A program made the position numbers and the translations under genes. A stretch of DNA of 64,000 nucleotides from positions 1-64,000 of the forward strand of contig CDROCS010005890.1 of NCBI GenBank assembly GCA_977020255.1, given 5' to 3'. Shown here piece after piece: positions 264-59,479 of this stretch. This stretch comes from Obrimoposthia wandeli (taxonomy: Eukaryota). The notes beneath the pieces are model-generated. The model did no database searches, was not told the origin of the DNA, and saw nothing but the letters and a program-made list of their open reading frames with translations. Each line of letters begins with the position of its first letter. Within the stretch, counting starts at the first letter, position 1.

Positions 264-355
264 ATGCAGTCCTTTAATGTTTATAAATTATTGTTAATCT
301 TCATATCACTGTTTGATGTCATACGAGAGGCATGACATCAAAAATTGGTTGGCTT

Positions 356-546
356 TATGCCCAAGCCACTTGAAGATGAGGGTTGTGCAAGTCGATAAAG
401 CGGTAGCACCAAAGCATTGATTGAAGACGACACCATGGATGGTGAAGGTAGAGCGAAGCCGGATGCCAGAGCCGAGAGTCGTTGTTCCATTGTCGAAATC
501 AATAACGCCACAGATGCCCCTTTATCGTATTGCCCGAAGGGAGCTG
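356..546 (+). repeat. ERIC-like miniature element, copy A (left end plus internal modules; right end missing)
   Basis: Starts TATGCCCAAGCCACTTGAAGATG and is colinear and near-identical to about 12712-12903 over about 190 bp. No right terminus is seen. Confidence 0.9.
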
Positions 547-1461: not shown

Positions 1462-2033
1462 TAGATCACCAACTCTTGCTGCTCTTGAATAAGCATGCCT
1501 TCCTGCATTATCCAGGCAATAACGTAAATAACACCACCGATAAGCAGATAATTAAGCTCAGTTGAGCCGAAGTTGATAATAATAGCTAAGCTGTCACTCA
1601 GCCCTGTAAAGCGAATAAACAATGTCACTAGCACAGGATAAATAAGGTTTAACAGCAACCAAAACAGTAAGGTTTTACCCAACATTTTCAAACAGTAAAT
1701 GGTATTAGATGTGAAAATTTCACCACGTTGATAATAAGAAAACAAACGTAACAAAAAGAAATAGATCAGAAAATAAGGCAGTATCTCCGCTCCGCCTAAA
1801 ATTAATGTCGTATTGAAATGCTCTTCCTGCAGGCTTTTAGCGATATGTTGCCAAGAATGATTAAATTCGATAGTAAAATCGCTATTAAATAAACCAAAAT
1901 TGACAATGGCTTGTTGTCCAACGCCAGTATTTTCACCTAGTGTTGCGACCAGAACAAAAGCCAGTAATTGCAAAGTAGCAAGGATAAAAATCAGATAACG
2001 AATATATTGACTTAAACGTGAAATTTTTGACAT
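1461..2033 (-). CDS. DUF2975-family membrane protein
   Basis: About 4 TM helices, GEIFT motif and C-terminal IAWIMQEG...QEQQELVI. Canonical pairing with a YozG-like HTH gene. Confidence 0.85.
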   Translation of the reverse strand: MSKISRLSQYIRYLIFILATLQLLAFVLVATLGENTGVGQQAIVNFGLFNSDFTIEFNHSWQHIAKSLQEEHFNTTLILGGAEILPYFLIYFFLLRLFSYYQRGEIFTSNTIYCLKMLGKTLLFWLLLNLIYPVLVTLFIRFTGLSDSLAIIINFGSTELNYLLIGGVIYVIAWIMQEGMLIQEQQELVI

Positions 2034-9138: not shown

Positions 9139-11967
9139 CTACATTTTGTAACTAAAGCCTAACAAGTATGATTTACCATAATCTTGATAATCACGTACTT
9201 GTAGATCACTATCGCCTTGCAATGACGTAAATGGTTCTTCTGTTAAATTGTAGCCTTGTAAGAATATTGATAGACCTTCTAAGTTCTTATATCCAGCCTC
9301 ACCAAAGTCATAGCCAATCTGCGCATCAATAATGGTTTCACCAAGAATTTTAACTTGTTCTGTGTTAAAACCAATACCGTATACATCACCTTTAAAGTCA
9401 TCGCGTTTTCGCATACTGATACGTGCTTGAAAGCCATTTCGTTCATAGTATCCCGTCACGTTTACAATGCTATCGGATAAACCGGGCAATTCAAAGTCGT
9501 TATCATTCTGATCTTTCATATCCGAATCAACGCCAGTGTAACTTGCGATAAGACCGAAACCGTCAAGGTTTTCATGAACCATTTTGAACGGAAAAGTTAC
9601 AGATACTTCATAGCCAGATAACGTGCCGTCACCACCATTAACTTTACCACTGCCTGTCGCACCAGGGTTTTTCGGGATAAGGCCGGTATTAGGATCGGCA
9701 ACACCGACTAAATCAACTTGATAGTTACCATCAAAAATCCATTGTGATAAGTCCTTCCAGAAATAAGCAACTGAAAAATATCCCTCATCACTAAAATAAT
9801 TTTCATAGGTTAAATCTACACCTAGTGCTTCTTTTGGTTCTAACTGCGGATTACCACCACTAATACTCCACAAGTTTCCATTTCCATCTACTCGATTATT
9901 GACCGATGCACTAACAGAAGCATTCATTTCATCTAAGCGTGCACGTGAGATGGTTTTTGCTACACCAAAGCGTAATTTTTGATCATCATCAAGTTTCATC
10001 GAAAGATTTAAACTTGGTAAAAAGTGACTGTAATCATGGCTAATATCTGTTGGGTTAGAAACGATTTCGCCACTTGAATTTGCACCGCTTGCTGTACCTT
10101 TAGAACGAACATCTGTTTTACTATAACGCAAGCCCACATTACCCGTTACTGGGAAACCTGCTATTTCAGCATCAATGTCAGCTTTAACAAATAATGACAT
10201 TACTTTTTCATTAACTGACCATGATTTAGTTGCATGTGTTGAACTCGCCGTATTTTCATTGGTTAGTTCATAAAACCCATCATTAATCAGAGCTCTGGTA
10301 TCATAAGCAACCATGTTACCCATGCCGATAAAGTCTAGCGACACTGAGCCCTGACGATATTCTTCAGGTATGGTCATTCGCGGTTATCAGGATAAGAGAA
10401 TGAAGATAACGTCATAAAAAAACCTTCAGAGACCTTAGTTTTTTCACGTTCGCGATAAGAAGTACCGTAGGTTATTTGAGAAATAAAATCATTATCAAGT
10501 TCTTGTGTGGCAAAAAACTTTAATGCCTTTAACTCATCATCAATGGAAGGTGCGTTAATAAACCCGTCTTGTGCCTGATTTTCATATTCAGTACCTGTAA
10601 GACCAAATTTATCATTGAGCGCACTACTGGCTCCCCATGATAGAGGTCCACCCAACTTAATTAGGTTATAATCACTGTAATCAAGTCCATGAGAGAATTT
10701 TGCTCCCGTATTTCCACCGTCAAAGGTATAACCTATATTATCGGCTGCACCACGGCTATCACCTCGGCCTGTACCCGAATAACTTTCAACACTGTATGTT
10801 TTACGTTCAACTTTTGAATAACTAGCATCAAACTCTAAATCCCAACGATCAGATAGGTCGTATTTACTATTAAAGCCAAATGACATTAAATCAGCTTTAC
10901 GTTCTTCGAAATCATTTCGAACAACAACTCTTTGACCTTGGGTAATAGCACTTGTGACAAAGCCTGTAGATGGATCTACTGTCGCCGTATCGCCAGAAAT
11001 AGAACCTTGTCCCCATGCAAATGGCACTTCTATACCACGCAATATTTTTTCATCAGAAAAGTCGACATATAAGGCATCAAATGTCATCAAAAGCTTTTCA
11101 CTTTTGCTTGCCGAAAAGCGGCCTTTTAACGCATAGGCAGGGAATCACGCTCTAACGTAGAAGAACGAACAAACGGTTTAGCTCCGCCTAAAATAGATCT
11201 TTTAGTACCATCATTTGCCGTGAAATCTGGGTATCCCCACGCATTCCAGCGTTTTTCCTGATTCGGTGAGCTCATTTTTGAGTATGCAAACGCAACACCG
11301 ACAGTGTCATCCGCAAACTTATCCATATAGGCAAATGTTCCACGAAACCCTGCGTCATCACCATCAGGGTTTAATTTATCGAAACTCGTTTTTTCAAATT
11401 GGCCATTAAATTGTAATACACGCTCAGCTTGACCTAATGGTTTAATGGTTTGCATATCAATAACACCAGCAATACCTTCCCCTTCGAGACTAGCATCCGG
11501 TGTTTTATATACAGTAACTCCACTCATAATCTCTGATGGGTATAAATCAAACTCAACACCACGGTTTTCTCCGATAGAAACCTGCTCACGACCATTAAAA
11601 GTCGTAGCACCTTCATCCTCGCCAAAACCACGAATACTAACTTTACTTGCTCGACCGTCTAATCGTTGTGCCGCTAAGCCAGGTAAACGAGCTAATGATT
11701 CAGCAATAGAAGAGTCTGGTAGTTTACCAATATCTTCAGCTGATATAGATTCGACTACGCTAGATGAATAGCGCTTGGTGTTAATTGACTCTATTAAGCT
11801 TCCACGAAAGCCTTTTACTGTAATGACCTCAATGTCTTCTATTTTAGTTTTTTTTGATTCATCTGCCACTTCTTCAGCAAGAGCTGGCAAACTCAAGGCC
11901 CTGCTCACAGGCAGCCCCACGATGGCAAAACCAAGATTAAAATCGGCTTGGTTTTAAAATTTAACAT
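9139..11967 (-). pseudogene. TonB-dependent receptor (putative maltodextrin/alpha-glucan), split by 3 frameshifts
   Basis: ATG at 11967 (MLNFKTKP...) then ORFs 11126..11920 (plug: IEVITVKGFRGSL, ISAEDIGKLPDSSIAESLARLPG), 10374..11090 and 9139..10377 (barrel: GNPQLEP, C-terminal YLLGFSYKM). The pieces are consecutive parts of one receptor, with frame breaks near 11925, 11090-11130 and 10377. Either a real pseudogene or sequencing error. Confidence 0.88.
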
Positions 11968-12310: not shown

Positions 12311-12711
12311 ACACGCCAGCATATTTTCACAGTTTTATGTAAGTTACTCTTAATTTTTGCAATTGACTTGACGTTATGAGACCTGAGCTTACTTATACTG
12401 TTTATTATTCATCTAAACTCTACCAGAACTCGATATATGTAGCAGGATTAATCAAGATACATCTTAGATCAAAATATTAACTTTAAAAGATAGAAAATAG
12501 TACTCGACTAATCAGTGTTTTACCTAGATTTTATCATTAAGAAAGAAATCATGAATTGATAAAATAAGCAATTACTCTTATGGGTTATGATGATTTTTTG
12601 ATTTTATTTTGTGCTGACACATTACAAGTATGAATGGAGCTTTAGTATTAGAGGCTTAGTGCTATTGAGCTAACGTTATAACAACGACCCTATACATTCG
12701 TCATACAGTTA

Positions 12712-13259
12712 TACACCCAAGCCACTTGAAGGTGCAGGATTGTGCAAGTCGAGAAAGGGGTAGCGCCAAGGCATTGATTGAAGACGAAACCATGGATGGT
12801 GAAGGTAGAGCGAAGCAGGATGCCAGAGCCGAGAATGGTTGTTCCATTATCAAAATCAATAACGCCACAGATGCCCCTTTATCGCCTTGCCCGAAGGGAG
12901 CTAAGCTAGAAAACCAGCTCCGCGTTGCATACCTGGATATGTACGTAGCTTTTGTCTGGAACAAAAAGCTGTGCATACACGGATGTATGCCCAGCTTTGT
13001 CTGGAACAGCTGTACTTGGATGATGATGTATGTGCCAGCTTTTTGTCTGGAGTCAGCTGATTGCATACACGGATGTATGTACTTAGCTTTTGCCTGGAGC
13101 AAAAAAGCTGTGCATACACGGATGTATGTACTTAGCTTTTGCCTGGAGCAAAAAAGCTGTGCAGCACTTGATAAGGGAATAACCATTGTCTTCGTGCTGC
13201 GCCTTGACCTGATTTCCTAGCTTAGCTCTGAAACTGCATCTTCAAGTGGTTTGGGTATA
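12712..13259 (+). mobile_element. ERIC-like miniature inverted-repeat element, copy B (complete, 548 bp)
   Basis: 26-bp terminal inverted repeats: TACACCCAAGCCACTTGAAGGTGCAG and CTGCATCTTCAAGTGGTTTGGGTATA (3 mismatches), with TA at both ends. No transposase. The interior is shared with copies at 356, 18791 and 56820. Confidence 0.9.
12927..13160 (+). repeat. Five tandem units of 41-49 bp inside element B, each with two GGA motifs, mostly in hairpin loops
   Basis: Units at 12927, 12973, 13014, 13063 and 13112. The last two are identical 49-mers, GCATACACGGATGTATGTACTTAGCTTTTGCCTGGAGCAAAAAAGCTGT. There are no unique spacers. Confidence 0.9.
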
Positions 13260-13277
13260 TGTCAGCTCACAGCGAGG

Positions 13278-13742
13278 TCAGTTAACAGTGAAGGTCAATA
13301 TGTCGGTTTGGCATTGGCAGATACTCATAGGCATATCATTTTTAATAATTTGCAGTGTTTTTTTATTTAACTGTATTTTGTATTTTCCTGAACGTAAACT
13401 GTAAACAGAGCTTAAATCGAGCAAGGTGCCGACATTGCCTCCGGCTCTGATCAACTGATAATCAAACGCGCTAGGTTTAGTGCGATTTTCGACAAGCCCT
13501 TGATACGGAACTGGTTGCTCATACTGGTCTTCGATGATAAATAGTGCGGAATAGAAGCCTTCTAGTGGCGTATTCCAAGTTAGAACAGATAAATCATCCT
13601 CACTATTATTTAATAAAACAAAATCAATAAAAACACCGTCGGCTATATTTTGGCCTGAATTAATGTGTAGTCTATAACTCATAGGGGGTTGTTCAATTTC
13701 AAAGGTCTCACTTTTAGATTCTGCAAGTACAACGGCCGCCAT
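13278..13742 (-). CDS. Hypothetical protein resembling the stand-alone N-terminal (pro)domain of M35/lysine-specific metalloendopeptidases
   Basis: FVLLNNSEDDLSVLTWNTPLEG...PVPYQG...PSAFDYQLIRAG...LDLSSVYSL pattern. No HExxH catalytic domain. AAGGAG RBS. Confidence 0.6.
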   Translation of the reverse strand: MAAVVLAESKSETFEIEQPPMSYRLHINSGQNIADGVFIDFVLLNNSEDDLSVLTWNTPLEGFYSALFIIEDQYEQPVPYQGLVENRTKPSAFDYQLIRAGGNVGTLLDLSSVYSLRSGKYKIQLNKKTLQIIKNDMPMSICQCQTDILTFTVN

Positions 13743-18615: not shown

Positions 18616-19006
18616 TTACAACTCCGCTAGCACAGCCTTAATATCTTCTGGTGACATGCGCGACTTATTAATCGACTTCTGTTTGCATCGTACGAATAAT
18701 ACCTTGTTGATCAATAATAAAAGCATCTAGCGTAGGGAGTCCATTACCACCTTTACCATTAAACTTTTCAATATCTAAACCATGTTCTTTATACCCAAAG
18801 CATTGATTGAAGACGAAACCATGGATGGTGAAGGTAGGGCGAAGCAGAATGCCAGAGCCGAGAATAGTTGTTCCATTACCGAAGTCAATAACGCCACAGA
18901 TGCTCCTTTATCGTCTTGCTGAGTCCTGTACCTTCAAGTCGCTTGGGTACAAGACAGAAAGTGACAACAGATTAATCATCTTTTTATTGGTAAGTAGCTT
19001 AAGCAT
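18616..19006 (-). pseudogene. AhpC/TSA (peroxiredoxin-like) gene remnant: 5' signal-like stub plus C-terminal 60 codons, with the middle replaced by ERIC-like copy C
   Basis: Minus strand: MLKLLTNKKMINLLSLSVL (19006-18950), then the element, then YKEHGLDIEKFNGKGGNGLPTLDAFIIDQQGIIRTMQTEVD / +1 shift / KSRMSPEDIKAVLAEL* (stop 18616). The C-terminus resembles the ...LPxPATFIIDxxGIIR...DYxxR.xPEDIL end of this family. Confidence 0.65.
18791..18950 (+). mobile_element. ERIC-like element, copy C (160 bp, both ends, internally deleted)
   Basis: TATACCCAA joined directly to AGCATTGATTGAAGACG, then the CCATGGATGG module. Ends CTGTACCTTCAAGTCGCTTGGGTAC. Confidence 0.85.
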
Positions 19007-57122: not shown

Positions 57123-57146
57123 TCTAACTGTTTTTTTTTGACAATA

Positions 57147-57278
57147 TATACGCGTTACATTTCAAGGTACAGTTTCAAGGTACAGTTTCAAGGTACAGTT
57201 TCCAAGGTACATTTCCAGGTAAGTTTCAAGGTACAGTTTCAGGTACAGTTTCAAGAAGTTTCAAGTGGTTTGGGTATA
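57147..57278 (+). repeat. Mini ERIC-like element, copy E, with a 13-bp unit (TTTCAAGGTACAG) expanded about 8 times
   Basis: TATACGCGTTACA + units at 57160, 57173, 57186, 57199, 57212, 57224, 57237 and 57249 + TTTCAAGTGGTTTGGGTATA. Confidence 0.85.
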
Positions 57279-58884: not shown

Positions 58885-58930
58885 TATACCCATTACACTT
58901 CAAGATACAGTTTCAAGTGGTTTGGGTATA
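58885..58930. repeat. Minimal ERIC-like element, copy F (46 bp, two fused ends)
   Basis: TATACCCATTACACTTCAAGATACAG-TTTCAAGTGGTTTGGGTATA; the single-unit version of copy E. Confidence 0.85.
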
Positions 58931-59479
58931 CATAAAATACATATACGTACAGTAGTGGGAAATGGTTCTTCTTGAGAGAGCTATTATATTCTCAAGTTAT
59001 CATCGCTGGCCTGAGAAATAACCATAAATAAAAGCTCTAAAGCCAGTTTTAACTTTTATTATATTTTTCGCGAATATAAGGCATTCTCATAAATTTTCAA
59101 TGCCATTTATTTATCTAGATATTGCAACTTTTAATCTCCATCTTCAATTACCGCCCTCTTTGCTGATAGGCTTTGGCGCTAAAACAGTAGCCTAAAGTCA
59201 ATTATCCAGAATTTCCTTTCTGGCAGAACAATCCTTACGAATAAAATGTCGCGACGAAAAAAAATAACCAAACACAGTGGTAGTACCAGTAGTATGGTTA
59301 GATAATTGTTTTATATATCAAATTATAGCGACAAACACTCTTGTTTTTACCGATTTTAGCCGCAAAACAACGACATTTAGTAAAATGAAATATATTACCT
59401 TGTTTACAAATCGATCAACTTGTGGTGTTATGCATCAGCAAGTAAAATTTGAATAAATACTCTAAAAGGATAACCTCTG

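Follow-up and report, generated by a model that had tools for sequence, protein, structure and literature searches.

The 64-kb window analyzed here, by which we mean the whole stretch of 64,000 nucleotides, is densely packed with bacterial open reading frames, has a G+C content of 36-40%, and has among its predicted products a TonB-dependent receptor, an amylase-family enzyme and a flavin halogenase. An 805-residue protein encoded within it is 93-94% identical to its orthologs in the Colwellia/Cognaticolwellia genomes G001-G003 and, judged by this similarity, the window is a contig of a Colwellia-like bacterium lying within the 1.35-Gb assembly of a eukaryotic host (G000; 6912 contigs). Several other bacteria are represented in this assembly, in which six csrA loci were found, and it holds at least one complete Colwelliaceae chromosome (C253, longer than 4.3 Mb) that shares 77% amino acid identity with the window organism. 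The TonB-dependent receptor (TonB-Xanth-Caul type; 9139-11920, minus strand) is split over three consecutive open reading frames, and may be either a pseudogene or a product of frameshift errors in the assembly.

The subject of this report is a short repeated element at 12712-13257, which is antisense to both of its neighboring genes and has further relatives elsewhere in the window. The features are as follows.

355-545, plus strand: truncated family copy, consisting of the 5' half with module M1
12710-12711: left copy of the TA target-site duplication (the empty site in G010 has one TA)
12712-12737, plus strand: left terminal inverted repeat, with the 'G-type' end CCCAAGCCACTTGAAG (part of inverted repeat I1)
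12785-12833, plus strand: module M1, 49 nt, with hairpins ACCA-TGGA-TGGT and GCA-GGA-TGC; present or absent among family members, as seen in the alignment of copies
12898-12920, plus strand: left arm of the inner inverted repeat I2 (23 nt, 87% complementary), which pairs with 13206-13228 and brackets the array
12926-13159, plus strand: M2 tandem array of five units of about 49 nt, from tandem-repeat and repeat-family analysis
13176-13177, plus strand: M3 site, unoccupied in this copy, as seen from the alignment and the listing of copies; M3 is 48-49 nt elsewhere
13206-13228, plus strand: right arm of I2, pairing with 12898-12920
13234-13257, minus strand: right terminal inverted repeat, with the 'A-type' end CCCAAACCACTTGAAG, from inverted-repeat and end-motif analysis
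13258-13259: right copy of the TA target-site duplication (one TA in the empty G010 site)
18795-18949, plus strand: internally deleted family copy, with one M1 GGA mutated to GAA
56822-57121, minus strand: degenerate family copy (D), with one decayed M2 unit

The ends of the element (12711-12737 and 13234-13260) form the 27-nt inverted repeat I1 that is 89% complementary and conserved across the copies of the family, and the boundary sequence is TA/TACACCC...GGGTA/TA. The orthologous site in the complete genome G010, where the flanks are approximately 84% identical, is uninterrupted and has a single TA where the window has TA-element-TA; the window element is therefore an insertion with a TA duplication, and the element proper spans 12712-13257. 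An empty site was also sought in G001-G003 and was not found. The G-type end motif occurs seven times in the window, where 0.05 occurrences are expected, and across the assembly the end motif is matched 263 times, as against 56 times for a control pattern, and the element at least 81 times; the end motif is found on the contigs of the window organism and also on C253. The family comprises approximately 100 copies in the assembly, ranging in size from 217 to 560 bp, and was also found in G001-G003 and in 29 of 61 sampled Colwelliaceae genomes, with copies in G010 being 97-99% identical. The element is thus a non-autonomous, TA-inserting miniature inverted-repeat transposable element (MITE) of the Colwelliaceae with inverted ends of 26-27 nt. 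The first-pass annotation had proposed a complete, TA-flanked, mobile element with terminal repeats of about 26 bp at 12712-13259, and both its completeness and its mobility are borne out; its description as ERIC-like holds for the architecture (inverted ends, TA flanks and size classes set by blocks), and sequence likeness to ERIC forms no part of it.

No autonomous partner carrying the MITE ends was found in a non-exhaustive search, and no end pairs lie 1-1.5 kb apart among the matches listed. Neither of the two 160-residue open reading frames inside the element gave a Pfam domain. An IS630-type element of G003 was considered as the partner and rejected because its ends are unrelated to those of the MITE; this IS630-family insertion sequence (L097-L101) is present in many copies, ends in ...GTAATTGGTATTA, and breaks the G003 assembly at contig ends. 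The family ends also occur on their own. Beside the degenerate copy D, at 57140-57274, a solo family end runs into a tandem repeat of a 13-nt unit, CTTGAAACTGTAC, present in about eight copies and derived from the MITE end itself, and at 58886-58931 there is a 46-bp mini-element that contains little beyond the two inverted ends.

Comparison of 29 complete copies shows that the element is a composite. Its commonest form is a 264-bp core into which three blocks, M1, M2 and M3, can be inserted, all in the same orientation. All four combinations of M1 and M3 presence and absence occur, the number of M2 units ranges from none to five, and about half of the MITE copies have no module. Contigs assembled from marine metatranscriptomes show the same blocks as exact skips of 49 nt for M1 and of 234 nt (between 12925 and 13160) for the array. 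Each M2 unit consists of hairpin A, GCATACA-CGGA-TGTATG, and hairpin B, AGCTTTTGC-CTGGA-GCAAAAAAGCT, with a period of 49; the first three units are degenerate, and the last two, at 13062-13110 and 13111-13159, have the same sequence. M3 likewise has two hairpins, CCTACA-TGGA-TGTAGG and GGTAATGC-AGGA-GCAATTACC. A five-unit array with unit number varying among copies had been noted at 12927-13160, and both parts of that description stand, with the array placed at 12926-13159. The 264-bp core contains no GGA-loop hairpins, and the resemblance to CsrB therefore belongs to the nested modules and not to the MITE itself.

The resemblance arises from the abundance and placement of GGA trinucleotides, which were recounted with the same result as before, 15 on the plus strand and three on the minus strand. 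Ten of the 15 are tandem copies of two sites in the array, and outside it there are five on the plus strand and three on the minus strand. That most lie in hairpin loops also agrees with the folding, in which ten of the 15 plus-strand GGAs, and none of the three on the minus strand, are in loops 3-7 nt long with four or more closing pairs; dinucleotide shuffles of the element gave a mean of 1.9 loop GGAs and a maximum of six, and a copy with a single unit exceeds all but two of 500 shuffles. Summed over 40 copies, loop GGAs number 120 on one strand and six on the other. The sequence ACACGGATGT was located at 12977, 13067 and 13116, as previously reported, and these are the sole WCANGGANGW matches in the 64-kb window, for which the chance expectation is 3.8. 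Because minimum-energy folds of the full-length element pair neighboring units together and do not show the local hairpins, local folds were used. For eight of nine sequence-distinct modules the minimum-energy fold has two hairpins with a GGA in each loop, the GGAs being spaced 24-25 nt apart; the exception is M1, whose two short GGA-loop stems were read from the sequence and did not form in ViennaRNA. CsrA and RsmE recognize the consensus A/U-CANGGANG-U/A, and a spacing of 24-25 nt between GGAs would suit a CsrA dimer. The module sequence ACACGGAUGU is an exact fit to this consensus.

Conservation of the loop GGAs relative to other positions had been named beforehand as a way in which the CsrA reading could fail, and it came out in favor of the GGAs. 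Changes are present at seven of 222 loop GGA cells and at 105 of 1280 other internal cells (odds ratio 0.36, nominal p = 0.0055, which is indicative only because the copies are related), so that the loop GGAs are about 2.6-fold better conserved. Compensatory changes on both sides of a pair occur in the stems of M2 (C-G/T-A and C-G/G-C), of M3 (T-A/C-G) and of a related 51-nt unit described below (four pairs); of the two GGAs in the 51-nt unit, one never varies and the other has a single change among 16 distinct units from three species. As judged from these alignments, some constraint acts on the stems and on the GGA loops. The source of the constraint could be a mobilizing enzyme, the stability of single-strand hairpins, or an RNA-binding protein, and the retention of GGA over nine unrelated stem sequences points to a sequence-specific reader of the loop. 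G-U pairs number ten to eight A-C pairs in the MITE modules and four to seven in the 51-nt units, and since there is no excess of G-U over A-C the structure is not assignable to RNA rather than DNA.

Weak matches to the Rfam CsrB model in G001-G003 led to a second setting for such hairpins, dispersed tandem arrays of a 51-nt unit with hairpins GTTCA-GGA-TGAAC and ACA-NGGA-TGT. Their locations are given below together with those of two csrB-like genes of the same lineage.

L064, 1546-1760: 51-nt array
L065, about 1470-1770, minus strand: 51-nt array
L067, 1520-1720: 51-nt array
L089-L096: 51-nt arrays
L066, 1500-1991, minus strand: csrB-like gene, GacA/UvrY box with one mismatch, rho-independent terminator
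L068, 1500-1990: csrB-like gene, perfect GacA/UvrY box, rho-independent terminator

In 10-11 of 11 loci the array starts right after the T-run in the terminator of a gene that lies upstream and is co-oriented with it, and three pairs of array loci are orthologous between species. The modules are also nested in one another, being found inverted inside 51-nt arrays and inside some copies of the MITE in G003. Two kinds of inverted insertion were seen at L054, L057 and L060 (at about 1740-1800 in each) and at L091, L092 and L094. In one, a module of about 51 nt lies reversed exactly within an ACATGG^ATGT hairpin loop and splits the GGA of its host; three MITE copies that carry such an insertion are still near-identical to one another. 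In the other, an M2-like module has entered the 51-nt unit, inverted, always at the point GGT^ATGTCG. Insertions of both kinds suggest that the doublets can move by themselves, with other doublets as their targets.

Genes for Y1 (RAYT-like) transposases of about 240 residues are present in single copy (L085, L086 and L088), one in each of three searched Colwellia genomes. Those of G001 and G003 are flanked by GGGGTCAGA-type repeats and constitute a separate REP-like system. A RAYT/REP link to the modules was considered and rejected because the RAYT genes are flanked by the GGGGTCAGA repeats and not by GGA hairpins.

To evaluate the element as a Csr sponge we used the properties by which Kulkarni et al. 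(2006; PMC1488887) defined genes for CsrA-sequestering sRNAs. The element is intergenic and dense in loop GGAs, with the ten in short loops set against the shuffle mean given above. A scan of the element for sigma-70 promoters found none, there is no rho-independent terminator at its 3' end (only array hairpins with weak T tracts were called), and no GacA/UvrY box (TGTAAG-N6-CTTACA, allowing up to two mismatches) is positioned to drive any copy. An Rfam scan for Csr/Rsm families had been recommended in the first-pass annotation and gave no gathering-level match in the window and none at E<=10 within 12500-13500. Assignment to any Rfam family was rejected, as the signals were weak microRNA and TwoAYGGAY noise, and the one related match, to TwoAYGGAY, scores 18.9 bits against a gathering score of 43.

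The arrangement of the copies relative to genes was examined using open reading frames from a crude stop-to-stop caller, so that single assignments may be wrong. Among 61 unique copies there is no orientation bias: those that lie between co-directional genes number 16 sense and 12 antisense, the tally with respect to the upstream gene is 34 sense and 24 antisense, and for module-bearing copies, as counted from the orientation listing, it is eight to six. Because the window copy is antisense to both neighbors, read-through from these genes would yield the TCC strand. In either orientation, many MITE copies are no more than 100 nt from the 3' end of a gene, and about half of these are therefore probably carried in sense on 3' UTRs. 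In four marine metatranscriptome runs we found many pieces of the family running into diverse flanks, with depth summed over copies; these are unstranded contigs with possible DNA carry-over.

CsrA and csrB-like genes are present in related genomes. There is one csrA in each of G001-G003 and G010, and as the six csrA loci of the assembly include no ortholog for the window organism (the nearest is on C253, the other Colwelliaceae member), its csrA is inferred from these four close relatives. The csrB-like genes of G002 and G003 are canonical and have a TGTAAG-N6-CTTACA box that is perfect in G002 and near-perfect in G003, about 18-19 GGAs, and a terminator. They score 20.9-23.8 bits on the Rfam CsrB model, far below its gathering score of 71, and therefore go unannotated at Rfam thresholds; a 51-nt array scores 28.3 bits on the same model.

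The element is most likely no dedicated gene for a Csr sponge. The parts of the sponge reading that stand are the fit to the consensus, the conservation of the loop GGAs, and the presence of csrA and csrB-like genes in relatives; a promoter, a terminator, a GacA box and an orientation bias are the parts that do not, and the MITE itself gives the reading no support, its commonest form being a 264-bp core with no GGA hairpin and some of its modules being inverted and splitting GGA loops. We consider it probable that the element is a composite repeat of a selfish kind, with some reader imposing a constraint on its loops. According to this proposal, a 264-bp core MITE would have picked up nested two-hairpin modules of 48-49 nt, and one of these, M2, would have expanded to five copies in tandem, with replication slippage or unequal recombination as the most likely mechanism. 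The modules, which are themselves most likely selfish, would be part of a wider class of small structured two-hairpin (N)GGA-loop repeats in this lineage that sits in the MITE, as arrays right after gene terminators, and nested in either orientation, and the GGA strand would be transcribed only where a copy happens to be in sense within the transcript of a neighbor. Several observations run counter to a selfish origin. The hairpins match the CsrA/RsmE consensus closely and, with ACACGGAUGU, exactly; GGA is kept over the nine unrelated stems; the 51-nt arrays are co-oriented behind terminators at 10-11 of 11 loci and are kept at three orthologous loci; and pieces of the family are present in marine metatranscriptome assemblies, albeit as unstranded contigs. 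Furthermore, no mobilizing enzyme was identified; the RAYT genes lie beside other repeats and the ends of the IS630-type element are unrelated.

A rival reading, in line with the idea of the first-pass annotation, is that the GGA doublets are real CsrA-binding modules, spread by the MITE and by the arrays behind terminators and tunable by copy number, whose transcription in sense within 3' or 5' UTRs or by read-through would titrate CsrA or recruit it to the mRNAs of neighbors. The motif and the paired GGAs at 24-25 nt in each module speak for this, as do loops that are conserved while their stems covary, a lineage that has csrA and a GacA-box csrB-like gene with CAGGATG-type hairpins, 51-nt arrays that outscore that native gene on the CsrB model and are co-oriented with the upstream gene, the many MITE copies within 100 nt of gene 3' ends, and the pieces found in RNA libraries; precedents are provided by TwoAYGGAY RNAs (PMC4333381; bioRxiv 10.64898/2026.09.22.753630) and by a CsrA-binding sRNA from terminator read-through (PMC8144298). 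However, promoter, terminator and GacA box are all absent, the MITE is inserted with no orientation bias and antisense to both neighbors in the window, about half of the copies are module-free, some modules are inverted and split a GGA loop, the G-U and A-C counts (10 to 8 and 4 to 7) give no sign that a plus-strand RNA has been selected, and the RNA-library evidence consists of unstranded contigs that could reflect DNA carry-over. We therefore regard this explanation as unlikely although credible, and binding of CsrA with a regulatory consequence, which no gene-level signal supports, would be plausible at a similarly low level. Alternatively, the hairpins could be signals at the DNA level, read by a mobilizing enzyme (HUH/RAYT-like or other) or simply favored for the stable DNA hairpins that loops of the G-N-A type make, in which case the bias of GGA to one strand would arise from which strand is handled and not from an RNA function. 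Insertion at fixed positions, including the loops of other modules, and in either orientation speaks for this, and the tandem arrays, the strong strand asymmetry (120 loop GGAs to six over 40 copies), the stem covariation with no excess of G-U over A-C, and the Y1 transposase encoded in each of the three searched genomes are consistent with it; but the RAYT genes are flanked by the different repeat GGGGTCAGA..., no enzyme is linked to the modules, and the presence and absence of M1, M2 and M3 is also explicable by deletion across microhomologies of 2-5 nt, and we find this account improbable. That the GGAs came to lie in loops by chance, and were amplified by tandem duplication of one unit, gains something from the derivation of ten of the 15 GGAs from a duplicated unit, the modest five to three outside the array, and the lack of a WCANGGANGW excess in the whole window (three found, 3.8 expected). 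It is nonetheless very improbable, as eight of the nine distinct modules form two GGA-loop hairpins (the short stems of M1 being those that do not fold), a single-unit copy lies above all but two of 500 shuffles, and GGA is conserved beyond its neighbors and is invariant or nearly so in the 16 distinct 51-nt units of three species.

The selfish composite repeat that we favor is of interest with or without a role in Csr regulation. Without one, nine distinct doublets of 49 nt that share loops, nest in one another and sit behind terminators offer a clean case for studying how small repeats move and expand. For annotation, the arrays give rise to false 160-residue open reading frames and to weak false CsrB matches. 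If the modules do bind CsrA, then mobile DNA could rewire a global post-transcriptional regulator by changes in copy number and by insertion, and the proposal that TwoAYGGAY RNAs may act as sponges would gain a second, independent example, in a cultivable marine genus. We put forward only tentatively, and as unlikely, the broader idea that the Colwelliaceae possess tiny mobile two-hairpin modules with real CsrA sites in their conserved GGA loops, and that spread in MITEs, in tandem arrays and behind terminators would provide a dispersed, fast-evolving layer of CsrA titration or recruitment, tunable by copy number, beside the single GacA-controlled csrB.

The Colwellia element can be compared with several known systems. 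Correia elements of Neisseria and the ERIC/IRU elements of Enterobacteria and Vibrio are short non-coding repeats that have TA flanks and inverted ends approximately 26 nt long, are multi-copy, intergenic and found in either orientation, are often co-transcribed with their neighbors, and fall into size classes set apart by internal blocks of approximately 50-70 bp. The likeness of the Colwellia MITE to these is architectural only, and we know of no expandable two-hairpin GGA-loop blocks in either. REP/BIME arrays of enterobacteria and pseudomonads consist of small palindromic units, variable in number and located just downstream of genes, and the Colwellia 51-nt arrays resemble them in sitting directly after terminators; however, the Colwellia units are direct and not alternating, and the resident RAYT genes are flanked by other repeats. 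With CsrB, CsrC, RsmY and RsmZ the modules share many GGA-loop hairpins on one strand, at a density (15 GGAs in 548 nt) that is comparable to that of the native csrB-like genes (about 18-19 in about 310 nt), but the MITE is without a GacA/UvrY box, promoter or terminator, is under threshold on the Rfam models, and is present as approximately 100 dispersed copies in random orientation instead of a single locus.

The first-pass annotation knew of no description of a mobile, tunable Csr sponge, and this needs correction in view of proposals concerning TwoAYGGAY RNAs. Gardner and Eldai predicted in 2015 that these RNAs bind CsrA (PMC4333381), and a 2026 preprint reports that TwoAYGGAY elements are multi-copy, variable among strains and accompanied by REP arrays in Pseudomonas, and proposes them as possible multivalent Csr/Rsm sponges with an expansion like that of mobile elements (bioRxiv 10.64898/2026.09.22.753630). 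A CsrA-binding sRNA that arises from terminator read-through is known from the rrn operons of E. coli (PMC8144298). Repeat-containing intergenic regions were discarded by Kulkarni et al. when predicting Csr sRNAs (PMC1488887), and our searches of the literature for CsrA sites on a classical MITE, and for Colwellia repeats, found no paper. TwoAYGGAY (RF01731) has two hairpins with AYGGAY loops, and hairpin A of the MITE is similar in reading ACGGAT or ATGGAT. It differs in that hairpin B has the loop CUGGAG, which departs from AYGGAY, that no basal stem is predicted in the modules, and that the MITE scores at best 18.9 bits (E = 6.7; gathering score 43), with no match at E<=1 in ten loci. The Colwellia modules are further distinguished from TwoAYGGAY by riding inside a MITE with terminal inverted repeats and TA flanks and by forming head-to-tail arrays.
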